Source: Lepidodermella squamata
Taxonomy: Eukaryota; Animalia; Gastrotricha
Assembly (NCBI GenBank): GCA_047495785.1
Contig: JBLDXI010000002.1
Span: 1,178,001 to 1,242,000, forward strand
Length of the DNA: 64,000 bases
Direction of reading: 5' to 3'
Each line of letters starts with the position of its first letter. Within the stretch, counting starts at the first letter, position 1. Shown here in pieces: positions 17,621 to 58,661 of this stretch. Made by a program: the position numbers and the translations under genes. Under the pieces are notes generated by a model. The model had not been told where the DNA came from. It saw nothing but the letters and a program-made list of their open reading frames with translations, and searched no databases.

Positions 17621-18006
17621 GGGTCCAAATATTTGCACCAATAAAAAGCACAAAATTTGAGCATCCCGGCACAAAGATATTCAGATTCTTTGCGATACTG
17701 ATGCCTTCCCTGAACCTAGGCTTTTTTATTTTAGCTACATCGTGCCCTAAGCTACGTAGAAAAATTATCGATGTTGGGTTCTACGACGGCTGATATCGGG
17801 AAAATCACTGATTTGTAAAATCGATACTCGGAATCGATATCGGCTCTGCAGGCTGACCTCGTAAACTGACCGCTTGTAGCGCAAAATACGGGTAATACGA
17901 AGATCTATTGGTTAGACAGGATTCTAGTGAAGACATGAAACTCGAAAAACCATATTTATAGGAATCTAGTGCTGGAACGCTAAATTTAGGGTGAGCACTT
18001 GCCACG
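17621..18006 (-). mobile_element. Repeat family A, copy 3 (reverse orientation)
   Basis: Reverse complement of the same core (ccctaagctacgtag..aaaatcactgatttgtaaaatcgatactcggaatcgat). Confidence 0.8.
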
Positions 18007-18542
18007 CCCATTCAATAGAATCAGTGGATCTGAATTTCGTTGATTGATTCAACTTTCAGCTGAAGTCGTCTATTGCCACACCCCGAACATTTCACTGAAG
18101 GTTCAGGGTAATATTCCCGAGAAAATTTCATGACTAGGTAGCCTTCATTCCGTTTAAAAAAAGACACTCGCTGCTACTAAAATCGTTTTTTATTCTGTTT
18201 TTCTCAGAAGAAGTAGTCTCCATCAATCATTATTTATTTACGTAATAATAAGTGCGCGGATGAACGGAGAAAAACCAACCGAATAATAACATTACATTAT
18301 TACCACAACAGATAGGCCGCACGGCGCGCGCAGAAAGCAAAATGTATCATCCATCATATAGCAGCTTGAATACGTACGTACGAAGATGGCCAGGGTGACA
18401 CAACGCGCCCCGCGGCAGCTCAAAACAAAACATATACACCTACATTTTATATCGTCTGTTTCATGTATCATCAAGCCGCGCTGTTTTTAGAAAAGTGCGC
18501 CACAACACGAGTTTCATCGCTTCAACAAAAATTTTATATAGG

Positions 18543-21500
18543 TCAAGAAGACACGGCCTCGCCCGAAGTCGCCTCCATCTTAACAGCTACTGGTTCGTAT
18601 TTCACGCTAACATCACCGGCGGCGTGTTCGGGGCACAGCAACGACGACTCGGGCGGCTCCGGCTTCGATTTCGAGTCGCCATTCGTCGCATTGCTGCCGA
18701 TGAACGGCGTCGAGGGTGCGAAAACGGGTGACGAGGGCGTCGAGGCGACACTCGTCGCCCGGGCCGCGTCTTCGAAGCACACCGTGTGGTAGATTTTGCC
18801 GGCGACACACACCGCGTCCTTGAGGTGCCACTCGTCCAGCTCCTCGTTCCAGAATGTCTCGAAGCCCTCGCCGCACACAACGCACGTGTCCTTTTTCGTG
18901 TCAGACGCCGCCGGGCACGACACGATGGCGGCCGAGGCGGACGGCGTGGCGCCCCGGTCGTCCTGCTTCTCGCCGGAATCTAGCGACAACTGACCCGGCC
19001 GGTCGACGCTGGGTTGCGGCTGCTCCGGGGCCGGCGCCTCGCCGCCCGCACCGTCCGTCACGTTGACCAGCATCGACGACTCGTTGACGCCCAGCGACTG
19101 GTCGGGTTCCGCCGACTGCTCGAGGGCGATCCAGTCGAGGACGGGTAGGAACCAGGCTCGGTGCCGTAGCACTCGAACCGCCTCGCGCTCGCGTTTATTC
19201 ACGCGGAAGTGCCAGTCGAGGTGCAGGCGGTAGCGGCTCGACTCGGGCGACGAGAAGCGGCACCCGCATGAGCCGCACTGCACCCCAGCGTACAACCGGG
19301 TGACCTCCGCCGGGTACTTCGTCTTGAACAAATCCGTGTTGAAATCGGACAAATCCGGCGTTTCGGCGAATTCCGGCTTGGGCGGGGGTGGCGGCGGGGC
19401 GGTTTTCGCAGGCGCCGGTGGGGGTAGCATGCCTTTGTTCATCAGCCGCGATATCAGGTCGTTGACGTCGATTGCGGCCGGGGCCTGGGGCATGGGCGGC
19501 GGCGGCGGGTCGACGGGCGCCATCGGCTGGGCGTACGAGCCGCTGTGTTGCGTCGCCGCCATTTGCGACGGCGGGAACATCATGCGGAAGTCGGGGAATC
19601 CGGGCGGCGGCATCGGCGGCATGGGTGGCATGAAGGGCGGCGCGTAGCCCATCGGGCCGAATGGCGGCATAGGCATGGGCATGGGCATGGGGGGCGGTGG
19701 CGGGGGCGGGGGTGCGATGAGCTGCCCGGTCGCCGGGTCGATGAGGCCGAGCAGTTTGACCTCGGGGGTGTGGCCGGGCAACTCGACCTTGACCTTGCGG
19801 TTGTTGAGCATTAGATAGACCGGGCCGGTGCCGAACGCGATGTTGTAGCGGTGGTCGCCGATGATGAGCTCCTGGGCCGGGGCGCCGAGTTGTGCGGCCA
19901 GGGGCGGGTCGAGGCTGGGCAGCGGCACGGCGCGGTCCGTGTGGATCTCGACGGGTTCGTCGTCGACGAGCAGGATGCGGGGCGGGCCGTCGAAGCGGAT
20001 GCCGCGCAGCTCGCCGCTGATGAGCACGGCGGGCACGGGCAGGTCGAGCTTCACCTCGCACAGCTGGTTGTCGATCTGAATCTGCCGCGCTGGTGCGTGG
20101 AACGAAAATCGGTACCTGTTTCGGGAAATTCGAAAAAAACATTAACATTGGATCGCGGCAATTCAACCCAGTAGCAAATAGATAAAAAGCAAGTAACATG
20201 CAGCATCAGAAAAAGTAGAAATCATCGCGAGTGGAATAAAGCAACGTGATATCGACAGCTACTAATTATTTTTGAAAAAACCTCAGAAATCAAAACTCTG
20301 GATTTCTCACTCAGATATGTCACATGTCACAGCCACAAAGCTCGCGACTTTAGAAATTTAAGAGTAAATAATAAAAATTCATAAGTCGATACCACGTTTC
20401 ATGTTTCCACTGACGAAAGCCGAAGGAGCTGGATGCAATACGTAGCCATAAACCTTAGACCATTAGTAGCTCAATATGTAGCAAAAGTTTTTTCGCATAA
20501 CCCTTCAAATAAAAGTATACCTTGTATTTCTGCGCCTAAATCTGGCGAAATTAGGAGATAGGTCAACTATTAACGCCTTATTGATACACCAAAACTAGGA
20601 TTTCCTACTAGGATTGGTATATTTTCTAGGATACAGTCGAAAGGGTGTTTCTAGGTTCCTTTTTTAACAATAATGAAACAGGTAGTCCGCAAAAGTTTTC
20701 GAAAATCAACCTGACGATGTTATATTTCCATAAAGTTTGTGATGATTTTCACCTTGCTAGTCGAAAAACTTATATTTTAGAGCAATGTACGGAACGGAAC
20801 TAAATTTCAAAACCACAATATATTTTAGCGGAACCTAATTTGACCCAAGCCAAGCAGCGGAAGGTTGCTTTTCGAATAAATCTACGAATTCAAGGCATTG
20901 TATGAAATCCTAAGTGAAAATGTGTCTTATTCAGAATTTTATGCTAAATTTAAGATGTTTTATTTTGAATTATGATGGTGAATCCTAACATGTTTGAAAG
21001 TTCAGAAAAGTAGTTTTAAAAATTCCAAAATTTGGTTCCGCTGAAAGTAAGAGCATCCAAGTCAAAATATAAAAATGTCATTTTTCAACTGGTTGCAAAT
21101 CTGTTTTTTTTTATTTCAAAATATTGGTTTCATAGTGCAGGGTGTCCCAGAAGTTGCGCAGTTATTTTTTAATTTTGCAATTTCCTACCAATTTCATCAA
21201 GTTAAACATACCGAGAAAATATTCCTTATTTTATCCTCGATTTAACCGAATAAATACAAAATTTACAGGACAAAACCAGGAAAACCCCGATGGTAACTGG
21301 TTCGGTAACTTTCGCTATTTTACCCGGTTGGACCGAATTTCTCCTGACTTTTTGAATCCCATTAAAAAGTGACATACTTGATATCTATTCTCGTTAATTT
21401 TTGAATTTTTCTAAACATGTGAGATGTGACTTCGTCACTCATTTAAGAGACCCTTTCCGTGAACCCTTTCCGTGCATTTTCATTGCTTGTTTTATTTATG

Positions 21501-36595: not shown

Positions 36596-38017
36596 ATGTC
36601 AAATGCAGCTTTAACAGATTCGCTGGAGTCTGAATATGACTTCATTCAACTGCAAGATTTTGCGACATTTGAGCAGGACGAAGGTGACGTGGAGCAGTGG
36701 GAAATATTGACGACGGAACTAATTCGCCACGAACTAGTCAGCCTTGACCAGTTCGCAGCTAGACTCGACGAGTTCATCAATGCGAACCTTGAAATCGCGC
36801 GAAATCTACAGCAACTTCTCGACGACTTCAACGCTGCAACCAGTCAGTTCAGTTTGGTCCGAGCTGGAGCGAATGCGTTGAGCTTATCGAGCTCGGCTTG
36901 CCTCTCAGCGGGAGTCGCCACCCCAGCCATTGGACCAGCGTTAATGCTGACAAGTGCTTGTGCTAGTTTCGGGAGCGCTGCCGCTTTACTGGCCAGCGAT
37001 CTCCTAGAGGCTCAGAGATGTCGGGCGAAAATCAAAGCGCTAAGCTCCGCCACAGATCTCTTCAAGAGCTTCCATGAACAGACGGAATGTCTGATGCTTC
37101 TTGACATGAAGACAGTACCTAAAGACGACCCGCAGCTCGTGGCAATCATCCGAATGCTGAGCCGGGATTTCCTTATCTCAAGTCCAGTTGTTCGGCAGCT
37201 GCTTCTTGGCAAAACAGGCAGTGCTTTGTACGCTGAGATGCATCAGGATCTTCTGGCCTATCGAACCGGACTTGTTGGCCAGGTCTGCATGGGGTTTGGT
37301 GTCGTGCCCCGTCTCGACAATGCCTGGAGCGTTGCCATGAAAGCAACCAGCCTGCCGTGGTCACCGATCAGCATTTTCGCCCCTCTTGAGCTGTTTGCCT
37401 TTCTCAGCAGTGTTGGTGATTTCAGGCGGAAGAGGTGCGAATGCACGGTGGCGATCGAGCTATCACATCTGGTGATAAGTCTTCAACAAAGGGCTGATAT
37501 GATGAATTTGATTCGCCGGAAGCTCTCGCTTGTTCAGATTGACGACGAAGTACACTACTTATTCACCTGCATCAATGACGCTCTACTTTTGCCAAGTGAG
37601 GATGGCAAATCAGACCATGTTCATTATCAACTCTTGGTCTATACGAATCAGTTGGATCTGGAGCAAAATTTGACTGGGTCATGGTATCGGTATGAGGACT
37701 TCGCAAATCTCGCCCACTTGCTTAATCAAGAGAAGTCACAACAGCTACTGCGATCATTGCCTTCGTTTCCAGGCTTCACGAAACAACAAGCTGATAAGTT
37801 ACTGCAGGCTCATTTCGAGAGATTCCGCCAAGTTGTGCGACACCGCCTTGAAGGCTGGCTGTCAGCACTCCTGGCTATCCCAGAAGTCCTGCATATAGAT
37901 TACGTCGCTAAATTTCTTCAGCAACCAAATGATTTCCGCCACCATGTTGGCGAGCATCCTTGTCCTGCAACATCTGCAATCCGAAGTTCTGCTGAGCAAT
38001 TTTTCGGGCAGTACTAA
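36596..38017 (+). CDS. Apolipoprotein L-like protein fused to a C-terminal PX (phox homology) domain, 473 aa, single exon
   Basis: ApoL-like amphipathic helix followed by a small-residue hydrophobic hairpin (LQQLLDDF..AGANALSLSSSACLSAGVATPAIGPALMLTSACASFGSAAALLASDLLE) and an ApoL-like C-terminal helix (FAPLELFAFLSS..AIELSHL). PX hallmarks: VHYQLLV, RYEDFANLAHLL, LPSFPG, RHRLEGWLSALL, VAKFL. Domain calls were made by eye. Confidence 0.7.
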   Translation: MSNAALTDSLESEYDFIQLQDFATFEQDEGDVEQWEILTTELIRHELVSLDQFAARLDEFINANLEIARNLQQLLDDFNAATSQFSLVRAGANALSLSSSACLSAGVATPAIGPALMLTSACASFGSAAALLASDLLEAQRCRAKIKALSSATDLFKSFHEQTECLMLLDMKTVPKDDPQLVAIIRMLSRDFLISSPVVRQLLLGKTGSALYAEMHQDLLAYRTGLVGQVCMGFGVVPRLDNAWSVAMKATSLPWSPISIFAPLELFAFLSSVGDFRRKRCECTVAIELSHLVISLQQRADMMNLIRRKLSLVQIDDEVHYLFTCINDALLLPSEDGKSDHVHYQLLVYTNQLDLEQNLTGSWYRYEDFANLAHLLNQEKSQQLLRSLPSFPGFTKQQADKLLQAHFERFRQVVRHRLEGWLSALLAIPEVLHIDYVAKFLQQPNDFRHHVGEHPCPATSAIRSSAEQFFGQY

Positions 38018-39208: not shown

Positions 39209-42200
39209 TTACAGAATTGCACCGGCTACCAGTAGAATGTCTAAGGTTTTCTGTTTGTCTTCATCCGATACATCGTCATCGCAATTCTGGGCTACAAAAA
39301 GGGCTGTCCAGCCAGTTGACGGCACTCTGTAATTGACATCGACCCCGAGCTCGCGCGTGAGCAAGTCAACAACAGCTTGGCGACCTTTAAAGGATGCAAC
39401 CATAAGAACAGAGCACCATTTCTCAGATGGAGGATCAAACAACTTCCCCAGTTTGATAGCAATTTGAGATTCGAAGCACAAGGACTTGACGTCTGCTAGG
39501 AAAGAAATGAGAAGTCTCACAATATCGGCGTGGCCCATGTAAGCTGTGACGTGTAGAGGCGTAATACCATGTTCATCTTCAATATTAACGTCGCACTTAA
39601 ACTCCCCTGCAAGCAATTTAACGACGTCCGCGTGTCCATTCCGAGCAGCAAAGTGCAACGGTGTCAAGCCATTCTTCCCGGAGGCATTAACGTCGCAGTT
39701 GAACTCCCCTGCAAGCATTTTGACGACGTCCGCGTGTCCATTATCAGCAGCAATGTGCAACGGAGTCCAGCCATCCTCCGCGGAAGCATTAACGTCGCAG
39801 TTGAACTCCCCTGCAAGCAATTTAACGACGTCCGCGTGTCCATTATCAGCAGCAATGTGCAACGGAGTCCAGCCATTCTTCCCGGAGGCATTAACGTCGC
39901 AGTTGAACTCCCCTGCAAGCAATTTAACGACGCCCGCGTGTCCATTCTGAGCAGCAAAGTGCAACGGTGTCAAGCCATTCTTCCCGGAGGCATTAACGTC
40001 GCAGTTGAACTCCCCTGCAAGCATTTCGATGACGTCCGCGTGTCCATTCTCAGCAGCAATGTGCAACGGAGTCCAGCCATCCTCCGCGGAAGCATTAACG
40101 TCGCAGTTGAACTCCCCTGCAAGCAATTTAACGACGCCCGCGTGTCCATTCGGAGCAGCAAGGTGCAACGGTGTCAAGCCATTCTTCCCGGAGGCATTAA
40201 CGTCGCAGTTGAACTCCCCTGCAAGCAATTTAACGACGCCCGCGTGTCCATTCTGAGCAGCAAAGTGCAACGGTGTCAAGCCATTCTTCCCGGAGGCATT
40301 AACGTCGCAGTTGAACTCCCCTGCAAGCATTTCGATGACGTCCGCGTGTCCATTCTCAGCAGCAATGTGCAACGGAGTCCAGCCATCCTCCGCGGAAGCA
40401 TTAACGTCGCAGTTGAACTCCCCTGCAAGCAATTTAACGACGCCCGCGTGTCCATTCGGAGCAGCAAGGTGCAACGGTGTCAAGCCATTCTTCCCGGAGG
40501 CATTAACGTCGCAGTTGAACTCCCCTGCAAGCAATTTAACGACGCCCGCGTGTCCATTCTGAGCAGCAAAGTGCAACGGTGTCAAGCCATTCTTCCCGGA
40601 GGCATTAACGTCGCAGTTGAACTCCCCTGCAAGCATTTCGATGACGTCCGCGTGTCCATTCTCAGCAGCAATGTTCAACGCTGTCCAGCCATCCTCGTCG
40701 CAGGCATTAACGTCGCAGTTGAACTCCCCTGCAAGCAATTTAACAACGTCCGCGTGTCCATTCTGAGCAGCAAAGTGCAACGGTGTCAAGCCATTCTTCC
40801 CGGAGGCATTAACGTCGCAGTTGAACCCCCCTGCAAGCAATTTAACGACGTCCGCGTGTCCATTTTGAGCAGCAATGTGCAACGCTGTCCAGCCATCCTC
40901 GTCGCAGGCATTAACGTCGCAGTTGAACTTCCCTGCAAGCATTTTGATGACGTACGCGTTTCCATTCTGAGCAGCCTTGTGCAACGCTGTCCAGCCATCC
41001 TCGTCGCAGGCATTAACGTCGCAGTTGAACTCCCCTGCAAGCATTTTGACGACGTCCGCCTGTCCATTCTGAGCAGCAAAGTGCAACGGTGTCAAGCCAT
41101 TCTTCCCGGAGGCATTAACGTCGCAGTTGAACTCCCCTGCAAGCATTTCGATGACGTCCGCGTGTCCATTCTCAGCAGCAATGTGCAACGCTGTCCAGCC
41201 ATCCTCGTCGCAGGCATTAACGTCGCAGTTGAACTCCCCTGCGAGCAATTTAACAACGCCCGCGTGTCCATTTTGAGCAGCAATGTGCAATGGTGTCCAG
41301 CCTTTCTTCCCGGAGGCATTAACGTCGCAGTTGAACTCCCCTGCAAGCATGATGACGACACCTTTGTGTCCATTAAAGGCAGCCAGGTGCAACGCTGTCC
41401 AGCCATCCTCGTCGCAGGCTTTAACGTCGCAGTTGAACTTCCCTGCAAGCATTTTGATGACGTCCGCGTGTCCATTATCAGCAGCAATGTGCAACGGAGT
41501 CCAGCCATCCTCCGCGGAGGCATTAACGTCGCAGTTGAACTCCCCTGCCAGCAATCTAACGACGTTCGCGTGTCCTTTCAGGGCAGCAAAGTGCAACGGT
41601 GTCCAGCCATTCTTCCCGGAGGCATTAACATCGCAGTTGAACTCCCCTGCAAGCAATTTAACGACGTCCGTGTGTCCATTTTCAGCAGCCTTGTGCAACG
41701 CTGTCCAGGAATTCTTGTTGCAGGCATTAACATCGCAGTTGAACTCCCCTGCAAGCATTTTGACGACGTCCGCGTGTCCATTTTGTGCAGCAATGTGCAA
41801 CGCTGTCCAGCCATCCTCGTCGCCGCCATTATCTTCGCAGTTGAATCCCACCATAAGCATTTTAACAACGTCCGCGTGTCTATCCCGAGCAGCAAAGAGC
41901 AACGGAGTCCTACCTCCCTTTCCGGAGGCATTAACGCTGCAGCTGAACTCCCCTGCTAGCAATCTAACGACGTCCGCGTGTCCATTCTGTGAAGCAATGT
42001 GCAACGGAGTCCAGCCTTCCTTCCCGGAGGCATTAACGTCGCAGTTGAACTCCCCTGCAAGCATTTTGACGACGTCCGCCTGTCCATTCTGAGCAGCAAG
42101 GTGCAACGGTGTCCCGCCATCCTCTTCGGATGCATTAACGTTGCAGTTGAACTCCCCTGCAAGCATTTTGACGACGTCCGCGTGTCCATTCTGAGCAGCC

Positions 42201-45200
42201 TTGTGCAACGCTGTCCAGCCATCCTCGTCGCTGGCATTAACGTCGCAGTTGAACTCCCCTGCAAGCAATTTAACAACGCCCGCGTGTCCATTTTGAGCAG
42301 CAATGTGCAATGGTGTCCAGCCTTTCTTCCCGGAGGCATTAACGTCGCAGTTGAACTCCCCTGCAAGCATGTTGACGACACCTTTGTGTCCATTAAAGGC
42401 AGCCAGGTGCAATGGTGTCCAGCCATTCTTCCCGGAGGCATTAACGTCGCAGTTGAACTTCCCTGCAAGCATGATGACGACGTCCGCGTGTCCATTTTGA
42501 GCAGCAATGTGCAACGGTGTCCTGCCATCCTCTTCGAATGCATTAACGTTGCAGTTGAACTCCCCTGCAAGCATTTTGACGACGTCCGCGTTTCCATTCT
42601 GAGCAGCCTTGTGCAACGCTGTCCAGCCATCCTCGTCGCAGGCATTAACGTCGCAGTTGAACTCCCCTGCAAGCAATTTAACGACGTCCGCGTATCCATT
42701 TTGAGCAGCAATGTGCAATGGTGTCCAGCCTTTCTTCCCGGAGGCATTAACGTCGCAGTTGAACTCCCCTGCAAGCATTTTGATAACGTCCGCGTGTCCA
42801 TTCAGGGCAGCGTTATGCAAGGCGGTTAGTCCCAGCACCATTGTAGTATCCACATTTATGTATTTGTTTGCGAGAAGTTTAACCATTTCGGTCTGTCCCT
42901 CCCCAGCCGCAACATGCAACAGCGTCATCTTGCTTTCATTCTGCTTTTGAACGTCTGCCTTCATTGCACCAGCTAATATTTTAAAAACCTTAGTGTGGCC
43001 GTTCTTAACTGCCGCCCATATAGGGGTCTCATCATTGTTTGTCGCAGTATCTATGCTTTCTTGCGAAACACTTCCGAGGATTTCAACCGTACGCAGATTG
43101 CCGCTATTCGCGGCTATGTAAATGGGTGTTCTCCCCAATAGATCCATTAACAGCGGATTAGCATTGAACCTTGTTACCAATAGTTTTGCAATCTCATCAT
43201 TTCCTTCCTGCGCAGCTAGAAACAATGGTGTCACGCCTTCGCTGTTCTCGCAGTTAACGTTTATTTTCAAAGCAGTGGTCGATAACAGCGATTCGATTTG
43301 CTCGATTTTGTTTAGCCTGATAAGGCGAAAAAGCAACTAGGCAGATAAAATGATAGCAAGCTCATTAATGATCAAGGAAAAATGCGGATTACTTTTTCTC
43401 CTGCACTTAGGTCTGGAATAGCAAGATTTCCAGCGGAAGCTGTTTCCATTAGCTGATGGGCGATTTGATCTTCTGTCAGCGAATTATCCGTTGCGTTAAG
43501 CAAAGCTTGCGGCGGAACGCGCCTCGAGCTGTTTTTTTCACGAATCATAGCCATGATCGCGTTCCGGAAATGAAATGAATAACCGCGCGAATCATCAAAG
43601 TCTCTCGGATGATTGCTGTATATGCATATGTATTTGGGTGAATCAAAGGATGGCTTATTGTTTGAAACTTACAAAAGGATTGCCAAAGTAGAGTCAAACT
43701 TGAAATTATTTCGTATAAAAAACTTTATTTCCATCCAGAGGAATAGCTTACAGGCATGCAGAAATTTGCCAGCTCGAACAAAGTGACACCCAAAGACCAC
43801 CAGTCGCTCGCTTGTGAGTGATCTTTCTTCGCAAAGAGTTCAGGCGCTTTGTAAAGCTGATTGCCACCGTGTCTCAAGTTTTCAACTGGTTGCTTCTTGC
43901 TCCTTTGTGAGCATTGTGACATGGAATATTACATCAAATCCTTGTTCAAAACATCGATCCTACCTTTCGTAAACTTTCGCCAGCCCGAACCCTCCAAGTT
44001 TGACAGTGGTTCTGTTATGGAGAAAAATATTCTTAGGTTCTATTGCGCGATGGAGAATTCCGCTTTCGTGCAGCTTTTCCAGCGCAGAAGCAAGCTGCCG
44101 TGACCATTCCATCAACAGACTTTCGGGAATAGGTCCAGCCGATTTTTTCTTGTAATCATTCAAATTTCCATCCGAACAGTATTCCATTACCAAATGATAA
44201 ATTGCCGCACCTGCAGAGCCATGCTCTTCAAACAATGAAAACAAGAATTATAAAATATAAAGACAAACATGGCTTTTGAGCAATTTTTAGTTGTCTTGAC
44301 TAAGGGGGCAGAAAATGATTTGCAGTGGGATTTCACGCGGAACGGAAAATAGTGACATACTTCACGCACTCAAAGCACAGTAGTACGATAAACAAAAGGT
44401 GCATGCGACTCACCCTCGAATGATCCAAAAACCGAAAGGATGTTAGGGTGCCGCAAATCGGTGAGTTTAAGATTCTATTATGTTAAACATCTTTTTACAT
44501 GCATTTTTGATAATAAAAACGGGGCTTTACCTCGTCTCGGCTTAGTTTGATTATTCTTTCTGCAAAATTAGGATCGCTGTCATAACTACGAGGAATTAGG
44601 CTTAGGTTGAATGCCTTGACAACATAACGGGCCACGTCTTTGTATCCCCTGCATAGCATTGCCGAGCTGAAGGTACCTCTTCCGAGCTCCCTTTCACGCT
44701 TGAACTCGTGGATTGAGGAAAAACTCAATTTCTTTGCTTCCGCTACGGGCGCTTTGGTGTTCACTTGTCTAATGAAATGACTGATGAGTAGAGCACCAGC
44801 ATCAGCTCGCTTTGAAGGGTCTTTAACGAGCATCGACAGAACAAAGCAATGGTACTCATTTGAATAAGGCCGGTCTTTGGCAAATGATTTCGGTTCTTCC
44901 CTGGAAATATAAAGATCAACATATAGTTAGCGACGCCCCAAAACAACCACTTTGATGACTCATTCGATCGCACTTTAGGAGCCTAACGTTATGATGAAAT
45001 ACGTTCTGCTTATAGAGCTTGAGACTAACAGTAGACGTTCCCGACTTTCCTATGCATAATATAACAGCATAATAATAAAGTATGAGCGATACACTTTTCC
45101 TGTGTTCACATAGCCACATCCTTAAAAAATGAACTACATTCTTCGCCCGAATTTTCTGTTATTTTCACCATTACGCGAACTTTCTGACGTCGATATTACG

Positions 45201-47336
45201 GGGCGTATGTTTCCTACAATACAACAGACCTTATTCTTAATTTAATTGAACCATATCGCGGGGTCACATTTTATTCAACATCAAATTTACTTCTTACTTT
45301 ATGTTTACTTTTTCTCAGATTACTTTTTCTATCATCAAACTCTTTTTTCAACAGTAAATTTCGATATGTTAATATTTGCGATACACACTCATTAAAGCCC
45401 TTGATGATGGCCGGGAAAATAACAGAAAATTCGGGCGAAGAATGTAGTTCATTTTTTAAGGATGTGGCTATGTGAACACAGGAAAAGTGTATCGCTCAAT
45501 GGCTAAGCGTACACAATGTGCGTGACACACAGCCAAATTTAACCCTTTCACGGCGGGAAGGACGATTTCGTAATTTCGACTTTGCTAATTCACAGTTCCA
45601 TCAATTTAACGAATTTTCCCATAATAATTGGCAAAATACTACTTTCGGATGTTGCCTACAAGAATCCATCAGTAAAATTTAGTTATCTCTTCCGCTCTTG
45701 GAATACGATCAATTTTAAAATTTCAAACCGATGCACGTTTTCCTTATTTTTTTCAATCGAACTTACTTGATGATATCAGTTAGATTATCGAACTGAAAAA
45801 TAATTTCATTTATATTTATTGAACATGCGGAAATTATTTGCTTACCGGCAAGTAGAAATTAGCCAGTTCGAATAAAGTCACGCCAAGCGACCAGCAGTCG
45901 CTCTCCTTTGAATTCTTGCTACTGAACGTTTCTGGCGCCATGTACAATTTCGTGCCAAAAGCAACTGGCATGCTCGTCGAACTTGGCCGAATTCAAATAA
46001 TTTCTTTTCTCATATGCTTCATGCAATCTAATATGACTCACCCGCCATCAATGTCTGGGGATTTAGCTAAGCCGAAATCGCCAAGTTTCACGATCCTATC
46101 GTCCGAGCACAAAAATATGTTAGCAGGCTTGATGTCCCTATGCATCGCGCCAAGACTGTGAATCTTATTGACAGCGGACACCAACTGGCAAGACCATTCG
46201 TGCAAGAGGCCTTCTGGTATTACCGATTGGGATTCTTTTTTCCGTTTGATGTACTTTTCCAAATCGCCATTTGAACAATGCTCCATCACCAAGTAGTAAA
46301 TTTCATCCTGCAGTGGTAACCAGTGTTCTAGCCCTTCAACCGTTTGCTGCCAATATTCTAGGAAAAATGTATTTAGCACATTGCAAGAGCTTGGGTGTCT
46401 CGCGGATGATACCTCTGAAAGCACCACGGATAGCGACGATGTTATCATGCTTCAAGCTCTCAATTAATTTGTGCTGATGAAACAATAATAGGTAGATGAC
46501 CGAAAATAAGTGAAAAGTGGGGTTTGGCGAAAATTTTGACATTGTGAGATTTTGATGCCGCCTTCAAGATCTCATAACGAGGAGTCGATCGGTATAAAAA
46601 ATAGGTTGATATTCATCAGGGTTGCAGAGAAAATGGGCTTCAAAGTATAGGAATGACAATTTATAATTTCGAAAAATGCGCGTTTTCAAAACCAATATTA
46701 AAAATCCCTCGCACAATAAATTCTGATGTTTTATTTTTTATGCGCTGTCGACATTTCTATGGGTAATCTAAGGTGAGGAATCTCGCTATATGTTCAAAAG
46801 TTTTGTTGGGATCAAGCTAGTGTCTCTAGGACAACTTCAATCAATGACACTTTCCAGTGCATCTCTGGGGTTTCCCGTGTTTTAAGGCGGATGGGAGCAT
46901 GTTAGAGGTCTGACATTTGAATATTCAAAATCCTCAAGAAAAACTGAGTAGAGACATCTAGGAATCCAAGAATCGTCCCTCTTCAAGCCAACACGCGTTT
47001 TGCGATTTGCTGAAAAATACAGAAAATACGCCAAACCCCACTTTTCACTTATTTTCGGTCAGATATAACTATGCAATTAGAAATAATGTGACTTACCTCT
47101 TCGCAGCTCAATTTTATGAGTTTCACTGCGACCCTCGAAACATCGCCATCTTTATTTTGGTAATTCCTCAGAATCGCGTTCAGATTAACAGCCTTGACCA
47201 CGTAGTTGGCTAAATCACCATCATTCCGTCGACATAGCCATGCGCTACCAAAGCTACCTTTCCCTAACATTTCGATCATTTTGAATTCGCACATTGAGTT
47301 GAACGCTGGCGCCATTTCGGGTAAATTCATGTTCAT
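39209..47336 (-). CDS. Tandem kinase-pseudokinase-ankyrin repeat protein (~1994 aa), 12 exons: 47336-47097, 46473-46413, 46357-46042, 45981-45846, 45792-45767, 44900-44531, 44474-44414, 44210-43964, 43902-43752, 43698-43673, 43615-43393, 43336-39209
   Basis: All 11 introns are GT-AG with matching phases; total 5985 nt. Kinase 1 (NEK-like): [32 protein letters not shown]. Kinase 2: [21 protein letters not shown], lacking both the catalytic Asp and the DFG Asp. The last exon encodes ~37-39 ankyrin repeats. Confidence 0.8.
39566..42830 (-). repeat. Coding tandem array of 32 near-identical 102-bp (34-aa) ankyrin units
   Basis: The framework gcattaacgtcgcagttgaactcccctgcaagca recurs every 102 bp. 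Protein unit: G[WL]T[PA][30 protein letters not shown]. Confidence 0.97.
45083..45498. mobile_element. Foldback/MITE with 84-bp perfect inverted repeats in kinase gene intron 5
   Basis: 45083-45166 is the reverse complement of 45415-45498; no clear TSD. Confidence 0.85.
46497..47061. mobile_element. MITE with 33-bp perfect inverted repeats in kinase gene intron 1
   Basis: tgaccgaaaataagtgaaaagtggggtttggcg (46497-46529) is inverted at 47029-47061. The equivalent intron in the pseudogene paralog is ~60 bp. Confidence 0.82.
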
Positions 47337-47538
47337 ATAAATAGTTGTAGCCTGTAGCCTCTAAAAGCAAAAAATGCTATTCAGTCTCAATGTTAAAAGA
47401 TGAAGTGCTCAGGTAGCAATTCTAAGTGGAGAAGTTGCAACCAAATGTGCTGCGCAGTGATTGAATATATTTGATTACCAAATTTGTTATCAACGAAAGA
47501 ATCGGACATATCGTTGGCAGCGCGGCAGAAGGAACCTT

Positions 47539-49746
47539 CCATTCCATCAACAGACTTTCGGGAATAGGTCCAGCAGATTTTTTCTTGTATTTATTCAAAT
47601 TTCAAATTTATTCAAATTTCCAATGTGACGTAGATTATCTACGTCACATGGATTAAGGTGGCAGATAATGGTTTACAGTGTGATTTCACGAGGAACAGAG
47701 TGTATATTAGACATAACTTACGCACTCAAAACACGGTAGTACGATAAACGAAAAGTGCATCCTACTCACCCTCGAATGATCCGAAAACCGAAAGGATGTT
47801 AGGGTGCAATTGGTTCACGAGTTTACGATTCTATATGTTAACATATTTTTTTACATGCATTTCTGATTAAAAAACGGGGCTAACCTCGTCTCGGCTTAGA
47901 TTGATTAATCGTTCTGCAAAATTAGGATCGCTGTCATAACTACGAGGAATTAGGCTTAGGTTGAATGCCTTGACAACATAACGGGCCACGTCTTTGTATC
48001 CCCTGCATAGCATTGTCGAGCTGAAGGTACCTCTTCCGAGCTCCCTTTCACGCTTAAACTCTTGGATTGAGGAAAAAATAAGCTTCTTTGCTTCTGCTAC
48101 GGGCACTTCGGTCATCTTCTCTTGTCTAATGAAATAACTGCCCAGCAGATCAGCAGCAGTAGCTCGTTTAGAAGGGTCTTTAACGAGCATCGAGAGAACA
48201 AAGCAATGGTATTCTTCCGAATAGGATGGCTCTTTTTCGAAGGGTCTTGGTTCACTCCTAAAAAATGATAACGATTGAGCGGTAATCTTTTTATGATATA
48301 AGGGAACCGAAATTTCCGATGCCACACTCCAAACTTACCCTGCGATTTCACCTGCACTATTAAACTGAAACAAGTAAAATTTCTTACGAGAGCGCAATCG
48401 CAGTAGCGCTGACTTACTGGCAAGTAGAAATTCGCTAGTTCGAAGAAAGTAACCCCGAGTGACCACCAGTCGCTAGCCTCTGAATTTGGCTTTTCATGAA
48501 ACGTTTCAGGTGCCCTGTACAAGTTCAAGTGCCAAGTCCAATCATCGAGATACTACTACCTGAACTGCGATATAGAGGTCAAGCTCCTCAGACTCAGATA
48601 TTATTATTGCATGAAAGCTTACTCGCTTGTAGGGGGTCTAGCCAAACCAAAGTCGCCATGTTTGACGGTTCTCTCGTAGTCGCACAAAAATATGTTCTTC
48701 GGCTTCGCTTTCGATATCGCGATGCAGTACGCCGAGGCTGTGAGCCTTTTTGACAGCCGACACCAACTGACAAGCCCAGTTGTGCAAGACACACTCAGGT
48801 ATTATGGCTTGGGCATCTTTTTTCGCTTGATGTAGCCTGACAAATCGCCGTGCGAACAATGCTCCGTAACCATATAATATATTTCATTTCCTTTCTGCCA
48901 ATGGTCGGGCGTTTTAATCGGCTCCTTCAGCAGTTCTGTAATAACAAATTTACTGTAATTTTTCGCAAAAAGAAAGAATACCCTCTACACAGGTTTTGCG
49001 CTTTACGCTATAAGAGAATTTCAGCCAATGACAGAAATGTTTTAAATGGAATTCCGCCATGAACAGCCACCATCGTGGCACCTCGAAACGATTCTGGTCA
49101 CAGATAAGAGACTATCTCATGTCTTAAATCATGACACAGATATAAATCTGTGAAATAGTCTGTGAAGAACTATGATTAGACCCATCCATAGTTGAATTAT
49201 ACCACCATGCCCACTCGTGTATGACATTCACGGCATGGATTGGTAAGCCATGGCGGAATTGACACCAATTAGTCCTTGGAGCATATACCCATGTCCCATG
49301 GGGAAATTCCATTCTAACCTTGCTAAATATGTCATTGGCTGAAATCCCTTTAGGGACTACGAAATATATGGCAAGCTTTTTTAATTGCTGCCATCATTTA
49401 CCTACCTGTAAATGCGCCACGGACAGCGACAATGTTGTCATGCTTCAAGCTCTCAAGTAGTTTGTGCTGATGAAAAATATCAAAATAAGCAAATGCCATC
49501 GAAAAAGCCCAAACTGTTATAAAGCCGTACCTCGTCGCAGTTCAATTTTATGAGTTACATTGCGACAGTCGCATCGCCACTTTCTTGTCCGTAAGTCATC
49601 AGAATCACGTTCAGGTTGACAGCCTTAACCACGTAGTCAGCTAAATCCCCATCTTTCCGCCGACATAGCCATACAAGACCAAAACCTCCTTTTCCCAGTT
49701 GTTGAATTCTTTCAAATTCAGATATAGAGGTAAATTCAGCCGCCAT
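47539..49746 (-). pseudogene. Decayed paralog of the tandem kinase gene (kinase 1 plus truncated kinase 2, no ankyrin exon)
   Basis: Same exon layout and high similarity to the intact copy (e.g. [35 protein letters not shown]). It has an in-frame TAA at 49555-49557, frameshifts around the HRD/DFG exon (48620-48900), and breaks off mid-exon near 47539. Confidence 0.82.
49011..49352. mobile_element. MITE with imperfect ~50-bp TIRs in a pseudogene intron
   Basis: atttcagccaatgaca (49018-49033) is inverted at 49330-49345, with further partial match inward and TA at both ends. Confidence 0.7.
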
Positions 49747-52505: not shown

Positions 52506-55500
52506 TTATTTTTCGCCATGGCACTTCCAAACGAAAATGCAACAATCATCTCCGCCGGCTGAGAACAAATGACTGTCATCTATTGAAAATTGAACATTAG
52601 TAACATGAGCAGAATGGCCGATGAACGCTTTGCTTCTCGCGCCAGGCGTCGAGCAAGGGAAGGCAGCTAGGCGGACAAAACCGTGGTCATCCCCAGCGGC
52701 AACAACATTGCCATTTTGCGAGACACAACACGAATTAACCTCGGTAGATGCTTGAGCTTGTTCAGCCGCTGTCGCCCAAAATCCAACTGTTTCCTTACCG
52801 GCAACACTTGTCCACGTGTGCCAAGTTTTCATCTCGGCCTCAGCCGTGTTTTTCACTGAATTTCCGTCCGGAATTGAGAAAAACTTGTGCCCGTAATTGC
52901 CATCTGCAACGCGAAGAACCGTTCCATCTTCGGAGAAGTCCATCTTATTAACGCAACCAGTTACCCCCTTGCATGAGCCGATTCGCTTCGGCGATTGCGG
53001 GTCGGTGATGTTGTACAAATCCACGCAGCAATCTTGCCCGCCAACGGCTAGAATCGCGCCATCCGGGCTGAATTTTACGTCATTAATCGGTTTACCGCGA
53101 TCTCGAATTTTATAAGCGACTTTCAGTGGATCATTGAGATTACCCATTGCTACTATCAAAAGTTGGCCATTAGTCAGGCCAACAGCGACAAAGCGACCAT
53201 TCGGCGAGATTGAGCAAGATTGAGCTGGAGCAGGGCATTGTAAACGCCGAGTTTGAGTCTTCTTTGTTATATCCCAAACTCGAAGGGACGCGTCTTGCGA
53301 GGCTGAAACTACGATGTTAGGTTCTTTAGGGTGGACTGATAGACCCCACAACTCGCCACCGCCATGGGCTGTCATCAAAGGTTGGCCCGTTGAAGTTCGC
53401 TCGGTCAACATCCAAATTTCATTTGAGGACAGACCAACAAGGATGGATCCTCGAATTCGGGAGACTGATTTAACGCAAACAGATTTTTCACGATCGGCGC
53501 CGTCAGCAATTGCCGCTAGGGCGTGGGGTTCAATTGAAAATGGCTTGCATCGATTCATATCAGGATCCCAAAGTTTCACAACGGTATTTTCGTTATTAGC
53601 AATCGGCTCTTTCGCCCCTGTTACGATGAAACCATCAACAGGTGTTGTATACATGGCGAAAATCGGGCCGAAATGAGCCTTTGCAATTATTTTAAACAGC
53701 TGGTTTTCACGCCACACGTAAATGTCGCCCATCATTGAACCGGTGTAGGTCAAAACTGGTCCATTTTGCGGCTGTCCAAATGCAAGTGAAAGCATAGTTG
53801 GAATTCGAGTCCGATCTCCTCCTGCAGATGATGGGCGTGCGTCTTTTTGAACTACAACGCCCCGTTTTCCGACAATTTGAGTCCCGGCGACCTGCCAAAA
53901 TCGAAGGTGACGAACTCCGACTGAGACCATTTGAGACTCTGAGTCGGGTTTGAATTGGCATAGGAAAATCCTAGTATCACTGCCTTGACATTTCGCGTGG
54001 ATTGCGGCTTCTTGCCAACGCCAGACCACGATAGTAAACGTTGGATCGTCAACTCCGACCGAAGCTAAAAATCGGCCTGAAGTCGAAAAATCTAACGAGC
54101 AAACACCCTTGCCATGTGGGGTCTTCAAAATCGCCACGGTTTGGGGCCCGTTCGGATTCGCAGCATCCCAAACGTGAATAGTTGGTTCTGTCGAGATTTG
54201 GCCCGTCGCGACTATATGCCACATTTTCGGGTTTTTATTCGTCGCCAAGCTTATGATGTCATCATCGTGCTCTAGATAGAAAGACTGCTTGCCTGTCGAA
54301 AGATCAAGGACGATGCCAGCCCCAGCAGCGTGGTACACAACCTTTTGCTGCCGGTCCCCAGCATCGGTATCAAGCAAGAAAAAAACATTTTGGCGACAAT
54401 CGTAGCCGCGATATCCGAAAATATACTCAAGGGAGAGGTCGAAAATCCGCGAGAAACGACTTTGAGACGACGTTGCTACCAACTTTTGTTGCCTGGGAGT
54501 TCTTGCACTAGTATGAAACTCCTCAGTAATCGTATTCAAATGCTGTTCATGAGGTTTGGCTGCATCAGCAGCAACAGCTCTACGCTTGTTTTCAGCGTAA
54601 ACTTTGGACATATAGTCTAGGTCCTTTTCATATTGGACATCCGAATCGAAGCCTCCGGCGTCATCACTTTCTACATCTGACTCTTCGCTGTCGCCACCAG
54701 AAATTAAGGTTGATCCTCGCCGGAGATCATTCTGACCTCTAAGGGCCCAAATGCAGGCCGAGGTATCAGCACCTCCTACTGATATCAAGAATTTGTCCCC
54801 GACGGTCCACCTAACATTGGTTACGTGGGCTGAATGCGCGCCGTAAGATCGAAACTTCGCGAATTTTCCCCTACAAGGGTAATTGAAGAGCTTAACGAAT
54901 CCGAAATCATCGCCTGTAGCAATCAACTGCCGGTCTGCTGTGACACACGCTGCATTTATGTCAGTAACGTCAGCTCTAGGCGGCCATAATCCCTCGCAAT
55001 TCTGCCCTAAAACCCCTGTTAAGGAGGACCATCCCCTAGCGTCAACATCCGCGTTCTTCAGGGCGATCCGCTTCCCGCTTGGGGCCTCGAAAAATAGCGT
55101 CTCTTTCGCGCCGGAATTGACCATGAGTAATTTACCACTTTCGTCCCAATCAATGTGAGTAATATAACTCGACGCTCCTCGGCAGATGCCGCAGCGTTTT
55201 TGAGATTGAACGTTGTAGATGTCAACAAAATTATCATGTGAAGCTACAGCAACGTACTTATTCAAACCAGGCGCCCATTTAATGTCTGAAATCTCCTCTT
55301 GGCGATGGTGAAGTTCAATCATTGAGTCGAAAGAATTCGCGTCAACAACTGAAACCTTGCCATCGATGTAGCCAACAGCTAACAGAGTTCCATCAGGTGA
55401 GAAAGCAATGCATCTAATAGCTTGTCTCATCTTTTTCGCGCGAACCATTGAACGAGAGGCAATAGACCAAACTCGAATGGTGCGGTCATCGCTAGCGGTT

Positions 55501-58500
55501 GCGAAAATACTCCCGTCGATAGGGTGGCAAGTCAACCCCCAAATTTCCCCTTCGCCGTGGCCTTGTGTAAGAATGACGAAAGTCCCATTCTTATCGAGTT
55601 CGAGAACATCGCCGGTTTTAGTACCAACCAAAATTTTCCCATGTCCTAACATCACTGATCGGACGCTAGGTTTGTCCTCTAAGAGGAAACCTCTTGTGCA
55701 TGATGATGACAGCAAGCCATATGTTCGTAAATTTCGCTCGAAACTGGCGTCCCATAGGCTAACTAAGCCATCTTTGCCGCCAGTTACGAACCCTTTATCC
55801 AACGAATGAATCGCGCTGCAAGGTCCATTGTGAGCTTGAACAACCCGTTCTAATTGATTACCTTTCCAGCAATAAACGTGACCAGATAGAGATCCGCTGA
55901 AGCAAATTTCAGCTGAATGCCCGTAAGCGACGCATATCATCGTGTCTAAACGAGCTACGGTGCCGAACGTTGCTCGATTTGAAGTAAAACCTCCACCAGC
56001 TTGTTTCCAAAACCGAATCAGCTTGTCACCGACTGTTACCAGCCGATCAGGGTCGAATGGATTAAATTTAACGGCGAAGATGTCAGCCTTATGAACTCGC
56101 GTACTTGCCAATTTTTCACCCTTTTTCCAGTCCCAGACTATGAGGGTTCTATCATCGTCCATGCCAATAGTTGCCAGTTTTCGGCCGCCATCCGATGGCC
56201 CGGAGAAATCAGCCGCGCAAATGCCTCGCGAATGATCTCCGCCGAGTATAGCCAGCGCGGTGTTTCCCGGCTGCTGCGCATCCCAAACATGGCAAGTCGG
56301 TTTCCGCCCGATTTGACCGGTCGCGACGATGTCTTTGACGGGATGAACAGCTAGGCACAGAATGTCGTCAGTGTGACCCTTGTAGAATCGCTGCGATAGC
56401 GTCTCGCGATTCATAACTACACCCAGAGCGGCAACAAAGTAGACAGCTTCCCCGGATTGGGTGTAGGCGACATTTTGACGGCAATCGTAGCCCCGGTAGC
56501 CGAAAGAGTGATAAAGTACCAAGCCTTGAGTCGGTAGTTCTTGCCGCTTGTCTCCCGGAGCTAAGTCTGATTTGATTGCTCGTTTGAGCCCCGAACCTAG
56601 ATCGGCTTTTCGGTCAAGTCTGGCTGCTCCAGCAGCAACTACACGTTGTTGCCGTTCAGTTTCTGAGTCTACTTCACGATCAGACCTCTCCGAGTCGGTA
56701 TAATCCGTCATCGAATCCATATAAGCGTTATCTTCCTCCGCCGAAATTACACGCTCGTGAGCCATATCATCCATGCTGGCTGATGCTGCGACGGCTGACC
56801 CTACTCGGGACGATATCAAAGACTCAGTTCCAGCCGGAATGAAGCGCCACTGAAGAATGCCCCGATCAGCACCCCCAGTAGATAAAACATATTTACCATC
56901 TGATGAGAACTTAATATTCGTAACGTGGGAAGAATGGCCGACGTAGCGACGATACTTGGTTCCCTTTCTTGGGCAAGGGAAATTGAACAACTTCACCAAG
57001 CCACTGTCATCCCCAGTGGCGATCGCATTGTTAATGAAGCTTGCATCAGCTGCATTTATATCTGTAATTGAGGATTGCGAATATTTTTCCCAGATTCCTG
57101 CACATTCCGGGCCGAGGATGCAGGTCCAAGATGCCCATCGCACTGTCGCCAGTTCTTCAGCTCGAGGCGTTATCAACTGCCCGTTTCGAGCGTCGTGAAA
57201 TAACCTCTCGCCTGCGCCTGAGTTCAGTTGAATAAACAACGAATCGGAAGACCAGTCTAAATGAGTTATATAGCTCGAAGCACCCTTGCATGTAACGACC
57301 TTTCGATAGCCATTTGCGACGGAGTAAATGTCAACAAAATTGTCATGAGAACCAACAGCGAGTAAAGCATCATTTGGGCTATATTTCATGTCGCTTATCA
57401 CTTCTTTGCGATCATGAATGTTGAAGAGTTCTTTCAAATTTTCTTTCGTCGAGAAAACAAGGAAGGCTCCGTTAATCAAGCCAACTGCAAGATGAGTATT
57501 GTCTCCATTTAAAGCACAGCTACGTCCGCCCGCAGGCAAGCTCACGCGAGCAACGATACGATGTTCATCATAGTCCCATAATCTCAGGGTGCAATCGTCA
57601 CTAGCGGTAGCGAAGACGCTTTTGCTCTTGCTGATACATAATCCCCAAAGTTCTCCGTCACTGTGGCCAACAGCAAAACTCCGAATTTTTGGGCCGCTGG
57701 AAGCACCTGAGTTGAACGTGGCCTCAAACAGTTCCCCGCCTTCGGTTCCAATCATGACTGCTCCCCCGTTGACTGCCATTGTAGCTACACACATGCCTTT
57801 GTATCCACCAGGGGCTTGAGTAGTAAGGTTGATCCTCCCCAGGCTGTCGAACTGAAGATCCCACACAGCAATGCAACCATCTTTACCACCAGTCACGATA
57901 CCACCAAAATCAGTGATCGCAACGGCTCGCGCGCCTCCTGGGTGCGCTTGCTTGATTACACCAACTATTTGCAGGTTATTCCAGATACAAATGTCACCAC
58001 TTTGTGTGGCGGAGAACAACCGGCCATCCTTCGAATAACACATGCTAAAAACTGTTTGGACCTCAGCAGATCTACCAAAAATGCCGCCCTTGCCGACCAA
58101 AGTATTTCCGGTAACATTCCAAAACTTGATATTACGAACACCTCCTGTGGCGCAAGCGGTTGGATCCGTTAAATGGCACCGCAAATCGAAAACATCGTTA
58201 GAGTGAGCAATGGCTGATGCCACCTGTTTTCCTTTAGACCATTGCCAAGCGATAATTGATGCTTTGCCAAGCAAGCCGACAGACATTAGGCGCTCTCCGT
58301 CACAACTGAAATCGAGCGAAGCAATGCCGATTGTTAACCCTTCTTTCAGAATCGACAGGGTAGTCATGTTTACTGAATTCCATACGCATATATAAGGCGC
58401 TTTTCCGATTTGACCACTAGCCACAATCTCACGTTTCGGATGAATAGCTAAACTCGTGATGTCATCATTATGGCCCAGAAAAAAGCGTTGTTTGTTGCTT

Positions 58501-58661
58501 TTAGTGTCTTCAACAATGCAAGTACCAGCGACAAAGTACACCAACTCTCCAAGTGAATTGTATAACAGATTTTTATTAGATTTAGTGCCGGCATATCCGT
58601 AAACGTGCCACAACTCCAACTTGGATTTTGGAGCGTTGCGGTCCAAGGTTGGCTCTGGCAT
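52506..58661 (-). CDS. EML6: Echinoderm microtubule-associated protein-like 5/6 (three TAPE/HELP-WD40 modules), 2051 aa, single exon
   Basis: Three HELP-like motifs (HVYGYAG; HSFGYRGYDCRQN; YIFGYRGYDCRQN). Each module ends with ATGDD.G.VKLF.FPC...GHS.HVTN..F and WD40 repeats. EML5 versus EML6 is not resolvable. Confidence 0.93.
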   Translation of the reverse strand: MPEPTLDRNAPKSKLELWHVYGYAGTKSNKNLLYNSLGELVYFVAGTCIVEDTKSNKQRFFLGHNDDITSLAIHPKREIVASGQIGKAPYICVWNSVNMTTLSILKEGLTIGIASLDFSCDGERLMSVGLLGKASIIAWQWSKGKQVASAIAHSNDVFDLRCHLTDPTACATGGVRNIKFWNVTGNTLVGKGGIFGRSAEVQTVFSMCYSKDGRLFSATQSGDICIWNNLQIVGVIKQAHPGGARAVAITDFGGIVTGGKDGCIAVWDLQFDSLGRINLTTQAPGGYKGMCVATMAVNGGAVMIGTEGGELFEATFNSGASSGPKIRSFAVGHSDGELWGLCISKSKSVFATASDDCTLRLWDYDEHRIVARVSLPAGGRSCALNGDNTHLAVGLINGAFLVFSTKENLKELFNIHDRKEVISDMKYSPNDALLAVGSHDNFVDIYSVANGYRKVVTCKGASSYITHLDWSSDSLFIQLNSGAGERLFHDARNGQLITPRAEELATVRWASWTCILGPECAGIWEKYSQSSITDINAADASFINNAIATGDDSGLVKLFNFPCPRKGTKYRRYVGHSSHVTNIKFSSDGKYVLSTGGADRGILQWRFIPAGTESLISSRVGSAVAASASMDDMAHERVISAEEDNAYMDSMTDYTDSERSDREVDSETERQQRVVAAGAARLDRKADLGSGLKRAIKSDLAPGDKRQELPTQGLVLYHSFGYRGYDCRQNVAYTQSGEAVYFVAALGVVMNRETLSQRFYKGHTDDILCLAVHPVKDIVATGQIGRKPTCHVWDAQQPGNTALAILGGDHSRGICAADFSGPSDGGRKLATIGMDDDRTLIVWDWKKGEKLASTRVHKADIFAVKFNPFDPDRLVTVGDKLIRFWKQAGGGFTSNRATFGTVARLDTMICVAYGHSAEICFSGSLSGHVYCWKGNQLERVVQAHNGPCSAIHSLDKGFVTGGKDGLVSLWDASFERNLRTYGLLSSSCTRGFLLEDKPSVRSVMLGHGKILVGTKTGDVLELDKNGTFVILTQGHGEGEIWGLTCHPIDGSIFATASDDRTIRVWSIASRSMVRAKKMRQAIRCIAFSPDGTLLAVGYIDGKVSVVDANSFDSMIELHHRQEEISDIKWAPGLNKYVAVASHDNFVDIYNVQSQKRCGICRGASSYITHIDWDESGKLLMVNSGAKETLFFEAPSGKRIALKNADVDARGWSSLTGVLGQNCEGLWPPRADVTDINAACVTADRQLIATGDDFGFVKLFNYPCRGKFAKFRSYGAHSAHVTNVRWTVGDKFLISVGGADTSACIWALRGQNDLRRGSTLISGGDSEESDVESDDAGGFDSDVQYEKDLDYMSKVYAENKRRAVAADAAKPHEQHLNTITEEFHTSARTPRQQKLVATSSQSRFSRIFDLSLEYIFGYRGYDCRQNVFFLLDTDAGDRQQKVVYHAAGAGIVLDLSTGKQSFYLEHDDDIISLATNKNPKMWHIVATGQISTEPTIHVWDAANPNGPQTVAILKTPHGKGVCSLDFSTSGRFLASVGVDDPTFTIVVWRWQEAAIHAKCQGSDTRIFLCQFKPDSESQMVSVGVRHLRFWQVAGTQIVGKRGVVVQKDARPSSAGGDRTRIPTMLSLAFGQPQNGPVLTYTGSMMGDIYVWRENQLFKIIAKAHFGPIFAMYTTPVDGFIVTGAKEPIANNENTVVKLWDPDMNRCKPFSIEPHALAAIADGADREKSVCVKSVSRIRGSILVGLSSNEIWMLTERTSTGQPLMTAHGGGELWGLSVHPKEPNIVVSASQDASLRVWDITKKTQTRRLQCPAPAQSCSISPNGRFVAVGLTNGQLLIVAMGNLNDPLKVAYKIRDRGKPINDVKFSPDGAILAVGGQDCCVDLYNITDPQSPKRIGSCKGVTGCVNKMDFSEDGTVLRVADGNYGHKFFSIPDGNSVKNTAEAEMKTWHTWTSVAGKETVGFWATAAEQAQASTEVNSCCVSQNGNVVAAGDDHGFVRLAAFPCSTPGARSKAFIGHSAHVTNVQFSIDDSHLFSAGGDDCCIFVWKCHGEK

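Follow-up and report, generated by a model that had tools for sequence, protein, structure and literature searches.

The 64,000-nucleotide stretch of the genome of the gastrotrich Lepidodermella squamata analyzed here (assembly GCA_047495785.1, contig JBLDXI010000002.1, positions 1,178,001 to 1,242,000; hereafter the window, to which all coordinates refer) contains a minus-strand gene predicted to encode a NEK-like kinase, a pseudokinase and a long array of homogenised ankyrin repeats. The units of this array owe their similarity to recurrent unequal crossing-over and gene conversion, acting in the germline and over evolutionary time. There is moderate support for the residues of the usual ankyrin groove resisting this homogenisation, their non-silent differences between units exceeding the silent ones about twofold. 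Taken as a whole, the locus is probably best explained as a kinase-pseudokinase gene whose recombining, groove-variable ankyrin array serves as a modular binding surface.

The array is the sole tandem array of the window. Tandem Repeats Finder places it at 39584-42811, with a period of 102 bases, 31.6 copies, 85% matches and 0% indels. An 18-base scaffold probe matches it 32 times at an exact spacing of 102 bases (chance expectation 0.11), and no further match exists elsewhere in the 64 kb. The core consists of 31 homogenised ankyrin units (39614..42775, minus strand), in frame and without indels, which correspond to residues 187-1240 of a 1375-codon open frame and are each exactly 34 residues (102 bases) long, versus 33 residues in the canonical repeat. 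One half-degenerate transitional unit flanks them on each side, and the 32 homogenised units counted by a first-pass annotation, made from the sequence alone, are thus a fair description when these transitional units and the 32 probe matches are considered. The whole array lies within a single minus-strand exon of about 4.1 kb (39209-43336). This exon starts, after an acceptor AG at 43337-43338, with a linker, followed by four diverged ankyrin repeats and a transitional unit (42776..43336), and ends with one degenerate unit and a C-terminal tail with weak ankyrin-like repeats (39209..39613, stop codon at 39209-39211), giving a solenoid of about 38 ankyrin repeats in total. A Pfam test of the 1375-codon frame with PF00023 and PF12796 recovered Ank_2 in 33 separate stretches with E = 0. 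The [G + C] content of the array is 54%, versus 44% for the window, and its 3.2 kb are free of frameshifts and stop codons. Long open frames also run across the array on the plus strand (796 residues); these are by-products of the repeat and not genes.

The history of the array can be read from its internal duplications. The youngest is a perfect higher-order repeat (39871..40674, minus strand), in which a 306-base block of three units is present in 2.63 copies without any difference: units 22-24 are identical to units 25-27 and unit 28 to unit 22, giving 804 bases of perfect 306-base periodicity with an exact run of 498 bases at the three-unit offset. At this same offset, the self-identity of the protein is 93% over 340 residues. 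Older duplicates of two to three units are also present, since units 1-3 resemble units 5-7 (3, 2 and 7 differences), units 4-6 resemble units 14-16 (9, 0 and 7 differences), and units 16-17 resemble units 21-22 (2 and 4 differences). Moreover, units 4 and 14 are mosaics that have their 3' half in common and differ in their 5' half, where they carry different hairpins. The PHI statistic is below the values of all 5000 permutations (P < 0.0002), and incompatible pairs, which represent 45% of all pairs of informative sites, increase from 25% at distances of 1-10 bases to 61% at 26-50 bases. Mosaics, multi-unit duplicates and the PHI result together imply repeated unequal crossing-over and gene conversion, the same criterion having been applied to the concerted evolution of metazoan repeats (PMC5100051). 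Two proposals of the first-pass annotation are borne out here: the shuffling of sequence blocks, by the PHI statistic, the growth of incompatibility with distance and the mosaic units 4 and 14, and unequal crossover, by the 804-base periodic stretch and the older duplicates.

The units differ from each other at a limited set of positions, numbered here with position 1 at the L of [11 protein letters not shown]. On average, two units are 86.6% identical in DNA and 75% in protein, and the synonymous diversity over the array is 0.156 per site (pS). The scaffold is less uniform than the near invariance, third codon positions included, that had been reported for it: the exact [11 protein letters not shown] is found in only 23 of the 31 units, an identical 33-base scaffold block is common to 16 of the 31, and third-position diversity in scaffold codons 1-11 is 0.078. 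In descending order of entropy, the most variable positions are 25, 22, 13, 15, 33, 17, 30, 12, 34 and 14. All variants previously listed were recovered, namely the hairpins SGKN, SGKK, CDED, SAED, SEED and FEED, W/L/R/G before TPLH, I/K/L/F after LH, and Q/E/D/F/P/L/R after AA. Positions 13, 19, 30, 33 and 34 vary in addition to these. The four elements occur in 20 distinct combinations, with about five unit types. Two classes of hairpin tip are interleaved along the array, a basic one (GK-N/K) in 17 units and an acidic one (D/A/E-E-D) in 14, and the changes at groove sites are radical (K/E, G/D, W/L/R/G and Q/F/P/R).

The libraries of DARPins (designed ankyrin repeat proteins) are built from consensus ankyrin repeats in which positions 2, 3, 5, 13, 14 and 33 are randomised. 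Setting the unit register by alignment to solved ankyrin structures places DARPin positions 33, 2, 3, 5, 13 and 14 at unit positions 12, 14, 15, 17, 25 and 26, respectively, and identifies the extra 34th residue as G3, directly after helix 2. Five of the six DARPin positions are among the 10 most variable of the 34 (hypergeometric P = 0.0047; rank test P = 0.004), so that the large overlap with the randomised positions noticed in the first reading of the sequence holds. In an AlphaFold model of six units (pLDDT 92.8, pTM 0.87), helix 1 spans positions 19-26, helix 2 positions 29-34 and 1-4, and the hairpin loop positions 5-18, with helices paired in each unit. This model superimposes on designed ankyrin binders with TM values of 0.85-0.91, a root-mean-square deviation of 1.0-1.5 Å and about 50% identity. 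With their i, i+3, i+6 spacing, positions 19, 22 and 25 share a face of the inner helix, and together with hairpin positions 12-15 and 17 they make up the variable sites of the concave face.

Selection was analyzed by comparing the six codons defined a priori by the DARPin positions with the rest of the unit. With three counting methods (Nei-Gojobori on pairs of units, minimum-spanning events, and tree-based parsimony), omega is 1.4-1.8 at the DARPin codons and 0.6-0.7 elsewhere, and the two classes differ (Fisher P 0.006-0.046). We also used our own two-partition codon model with a shared tree, scale and kappa, which gives an omega of 2.25 at the DARPin codons and 0.85 elsewhere under F3x4 frequencies (likelihood-ratio test (LRT) against omega = 1: 9.45), and of 1.95 and 0.80, respectively, under equal frequencies (LRT 6.59), that is, an omega of about 2.0-2.25 at the DARPin codons with a nominal P of 0.002-0.01. 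Because recombination inflates codon-model tests of selection, null data with omega = 1 at the DARPin codons were simulated on block-specific trees mimicking recombination. None of the 63 three-block runs and 1 of the 58 six-block runs reached an LRT of 9.45, thus 1 of 121 in total. The diversifying selection on groove residues proposed by the first-pass annotation is therefore only moderately supported: it is favored by the codon model, with its omega of about 2 and a single matching null run, and does not reach significance in the counting tests. Silent diversity is 0.21 in the variable codons versus 0.14 in the others, which fits a protection of unit-specific groove residues from homogenisation, and a pooled silent-rate test cannot separate such mere protection from faster adaptive change.

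The ankyrin exon is the last of a 12-exon gene model on the minus strand (about 1,999 codons), whose exons were searched one by one. The eleven upstream exons total 1872 bases and all have AG/GT borders and mutually consistent phases, the last of them joining the ankyrin exon in phase 0 at its acceptor. Exon 1 (47097..47336) holds the start codon, the glycine loop GKGSFG and the VVK lysine of kinase 1. This kinase continues through exon 2 (46413..46473; 61 bases, checked by AG/GT borders and phase), exon 3 (46042..46357), which codes for the catalytic core with intact HRDIKPAN and DFG, exon 4 (45846..45981, acceptor alternatively 9 bases downstream), which codes for the activation segment with APE, and exon 5 (45767..45792), a 26-base micro-exon encoding FDNLTDII. 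Among solved structures, exon 3 matches NEK7 best (E 2.4e-15), with PKR, GCN2 and RAD53 behind it. All catalytic motifs of kinase 1 are present, exons 1-6 carrying [20 protein letters not shown] and APE, and it looks like a working NEK-like kinase, predicted to be active. Exon 6 (44531..44900) joins the end of kinase 1, via a linker, to the start of the kinase 2 N-lobe, and the product would hence be a true tandem-kinase protein. The second kinase is encoded by exon 7 (44414..44474; 61 bases), exon 8 (43964..44225; core), exon 9 (43752..43902), exon 10 (43673..43698), a 26-base micro-exon encoding FDSTLAIL and parallel to exon 5, and exon 11 (43393..43615), which also provides the linker to the ankyrin exon. 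Kinase 2 is a pseudokinase, since HRA and GFG replace HRD and DFG in its core and both catalytic aspartates are thus lost. The parallel 61-base exons and 26-base micro-exons of the two halves argue both for a duplication within the gene and for the gene being real. Splicing being predicted, we infer that the kinase, the pseudokinase and the ankyrin array are in one reading frame. No NACHT, NB-ARC or other NLR/STAND component was found in the 12-exon model, which holds kinase and ankyrin domains only.

Both micro-exons (45767-45792 and 43673-43698) are needed to maintain the frame, and are easily missed by automatic gene prediction. Upstream of the gene, and also on the minus strand, lies a truncated paralogue of the kinase-pseudokinase module (47422-49746) with exons like exons 1-6. 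Its catalytic loop is interrupted by a frameshift (HRDI / KPKNIF, about 48660-48700), and it ends after a fragment of the second kinase (47422-47598), without an ankyrin exon. It is probably a pseudogene fragment that arose from unequal exchange between tandem copies.

Arrays with a comparable mode of evolution are known from the ankyrin, TPR and WD repeats of fungal NLRs, which combine high internal conservation (HIC) with a variable concave face, positive selection, shuffling of units and repeat numbers that are polymorphic among individuals (Dyrka et al. 2014, PMC4986451). To qualify as HIC, repeats have to be more than 85% identical to each other over 100 residues or more, and HIC arrays represent about 0.8% of the metazoan repeats surveyed (PMC4986451). 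The gastrotrich array exceeds this identity with its 93% over 340 residues, its mean unit identity over the whole array being only 75%, and its variation lies on the concave face with the exception of outer-helix positions 30, 33 and 34. It resembles the fungal arrays in its near-identical ankyrin units, concave-face variation, moderately supported signs of positive selection and recombinational shuffling, and differs from them in its animal host, its 34-residue unit and the presence of a NEK-like kinase and a pseudokinase in front, instead of a NACHT or NB-ARC domain. Homogenised repeats with a hypervariable binding face are a hallmark of fungal non-self receptors, found here on a NEK-type kinase-pseudokinase pair. 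The likeness to DARPins comprises the consensus-like scaffold, with the identity and TM values given above, and the high variability of five of the six randomised positions. In contrast to DARPins, the array is natural, its unit is longer by one residue, located behind helix 2, the number of combinations is limited to about 20, and, in DARPin numbering, position 14 is conserved whereas positions 1, 7, 10, 18, 21 and 22 also vary. Under a strict definition of the DARPin type (33 residues, variation confined to six positions), the array falls outside. The pattern is not unique to this genome, as it is also seen in the NACHT-ankyrin proteins LOC135123451 and LOC135123264 of the beetle Zophobas morio, whose homogenised units have 76-87% mean identity and vary, in DARPin numbering, at positions 33, 1, 2, 3, 5, 10 and 13. 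These proteins differ in having 33-residue units and NACHT domains instead of kinases in front, and are at most 40% identical to the array. A "DARPin-like" pattern may be a general property of homogenised ankyrin arrays.

The combination of domains has its closest parallel in Giardia, where most of the 198 Nek kinases carry ankyrin arrays that affect localisation and 71% of the Neks are dead (PMC3218828). These Neks have 1-26 ankyrin repeats, many of them on pseudokinases, and form a family that turns over, and the Nek-ankyrin association was stated to be seen in no other species (PMC3218828); in the literature searched, no such combination is described outside Giardia. Both systems have a NEK-type kinase, often dead, in front of an ankyrin array of variable repeat number, and both belong to a large, fast-changing family. 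The repeats of Giardia, a protist, are on the other hand divergent, and its proteins lack a tandem kinase-pseudokinase. A kinase and a pseudokinase in one protein are characteristic of the tandem kinase resistance proteins of plants (RPG1 and WTK1/Yr15 type), which usually have no ankyrin arrays. The likeness to these is one of architecture, and any immune role of the gastrotrich gene is putative.

A number of results weigh against a selected binding surface. Omega above 1 at the DARPin codons is not significant by counting methods (binomial P 0.2-0.35, with few silent sites), omega for the scaffold does not fall significantly below 1 (LRT 0.48), and the array overall thus evolves almost neutrally, its omega being 0.8-1.08. 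Three of the variable positions (30, 33 and 34) share a face of the outer helix, outside the classical binding face, as expected from the drift of any exposed residue. With about five unit types, much of the "library" is an amplification of a few old variants. In addition, the broken upstream paralogue indicates that the family contains decaying copies, and searches of public proteins found no relative with a known function. Such a picture could be produced by a neutral young array, recently amplified in a fast-turnover family, whose surface residues merely tolerate change without selection for diversity. The weak scaffold constraint, the nonsignificant counting tests, the variable outer helix and the neighboring pseudogene fragment all agree with this scenario, as does the fact that groove positions are the least conserved of ankyrin repeats generally. 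It does not account for the rejection of omega = 1 at sites chosen a priori, matched by so few of the null simulations, for the uninterrupted frame over 3.2 kb, or for the radical nature of the groove-site changes, and we regard it as rather unlikely. An error of assembly or of whole-genome amplification, affecting the unit number or the perfect three-unit block, might be suspected from the 804 bases of perfect periodicity, and a published gastrotrich assembly was made from amplified DNA (PMC11660948), if this is the same genome. This seems very improbable, as the 3.2-kb array is below the typical length of long reads, the frame is preserved throughout, and the older duplicates, which have diverged by 2-9 differences, record earlier rounds of the same process.

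Alternatives that accept a function of the array differ in what it would bind. By analogy to fungal HIC NLRs and plant tandem-kinase resistance proteins, it might be an intracellular sensor of non-self or of pathogens, whose groove would bind foreign or altered-self proteins and whose kinase pair would signal. The same evolutionary signature in fungal NLR ankyrin repeats (PMC4986451), the kinase-pseudokinase architecture, the tandem and fast-changing family and the variation of the beetle NACHT-ankyrin proteins at the same positions are consistent with this. Since the gene has no NACHT, TIR, death or other immune domain and the analogy is founded on the evolutionary pattern alone, we consider such a sensor unlikely. 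Alternatively, the array may place NEK-type kinases at cytoskeletal or ciliary structures of this heavily ciliated animal, as in Giardia. This would agree with the proximity of kinase 1 to NEK7, with the Giardia precedent of Neks, many of them pseudokinases, with 1-26 ankyrin repeats (PMC3218828), and with the TALH carried by some units, which is close to the Giardia TALM motif. It appears doubtful given that the Giardia repeats are divergent instead of homogenised and that a fixed structural target would not favor groove diversity. Finally, the first-pass annotation had suggested that new specificities might arise somatically, which would imply a diversification in the style of lamprey VLRs or by hypermutation. 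Apart from the repeat structure itself, nothing points to this, and we find it hardly credible. The exon is already complete and open in the germline, the variation is explained by germline duplicates of graded age, and all 32 probe matches are within the array, with no donor cassettes or spare units elsewhere in the 64 kb. Over this span, the locus has neither the incomplete germline gene nor the donor cassettes of a lamprey VLR-type system.

In the modular binding surface that we favor, unequal crossing-over and gene conversion homogenise the 31 central units, leaving multi-unit duplicates of varied age and mosaics. With moderate support, the residues of the hairpin tips and inner-helix face, which form the usual ankyrin groove, stay different between units against this homogenisation. 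The array would constitute a long, modular protein-binding surface with a specificity set by the order and type of its units, and would bring a partner to the kinase-pseudokinase module or control this module. Reshuffling of units across paralogues could then yield new binding surfaces. The role of the array as a specificity-setting surface that recruits a partner to the kinase module remains putative. A further and speculative step, which we think improbable, would be an animal family of intracellular variable receptors, independently built by combining reshuffling ankyrin recognition with NEK-derived kinase-pseudokinase signaling. If true, germline-encoded and rapidly diversifying recognition would have been achieved in a third way, in addition to the NLR and tandem-kinase systems of fungi and plants. 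Should the arrays set specificity, they would be a natural source of ankyrin binders and, in an animal phylum that has hardly been studied, a candidate recognition system. If they do not, the locus is still a clear example of how a protein repeat of an animal evolves in concert.

Searches of public proteins revealed no close relative of the array and retrieved generic ankyrin proteins only. Word searches gave at most 42% identity over short parts for the whole ankyrin exon and at most 56% over short parts for the C-terminal tail, and an exhaustive search with six units returned 367,137 ankyrin matches, with at most 47% identity among the best 150. Several Ras/Roc-ankyrin proteins have a 34-residue period and an EFGCDV loop, and a protein in ENA combines a 34-residue ankyrin period with an EFGCDV loop like that of the array. 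A database match combining a kinase with ankyrin repeats was discarded, as its repeats are N-terminal and its architecture is therefore different. The back-translated scaffold motif had no match in a first metagenome scan and five chance matches, in bacterial non-ankyrin genes, in a second one.

The remaining part of the window harbors other long open frames. Rfam and tRNA scans of the window found nothing. On the plus strand, an intronless frame of 473 codons (36596-38017), convergent with the ankyrin gene, shows a weak C-terminal match to the PX domain. On the minus strand, an intronless frame of 2051 codons (52506-58661) codes for an EML5/6-type protein with three HELP motifs and double beta-propellers, whose best named relatives are spiralian proteins, from nemerteans, brachiopods and molluscs (47-48% identity), one protein in ENA reaching 72%. 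This agrees with a spiralian-like host of a poorly sampled group. An exact look-up of these two neighboring intronless proteins gave no record, and no second copy of the locus was found by it. Finally, a GC-rich island at 18000-20200 (60%, versus 44% for the window) contains a minus-strand frame of 503 codons with matches to a Pcf11-type zinc finger and C-terminal region.

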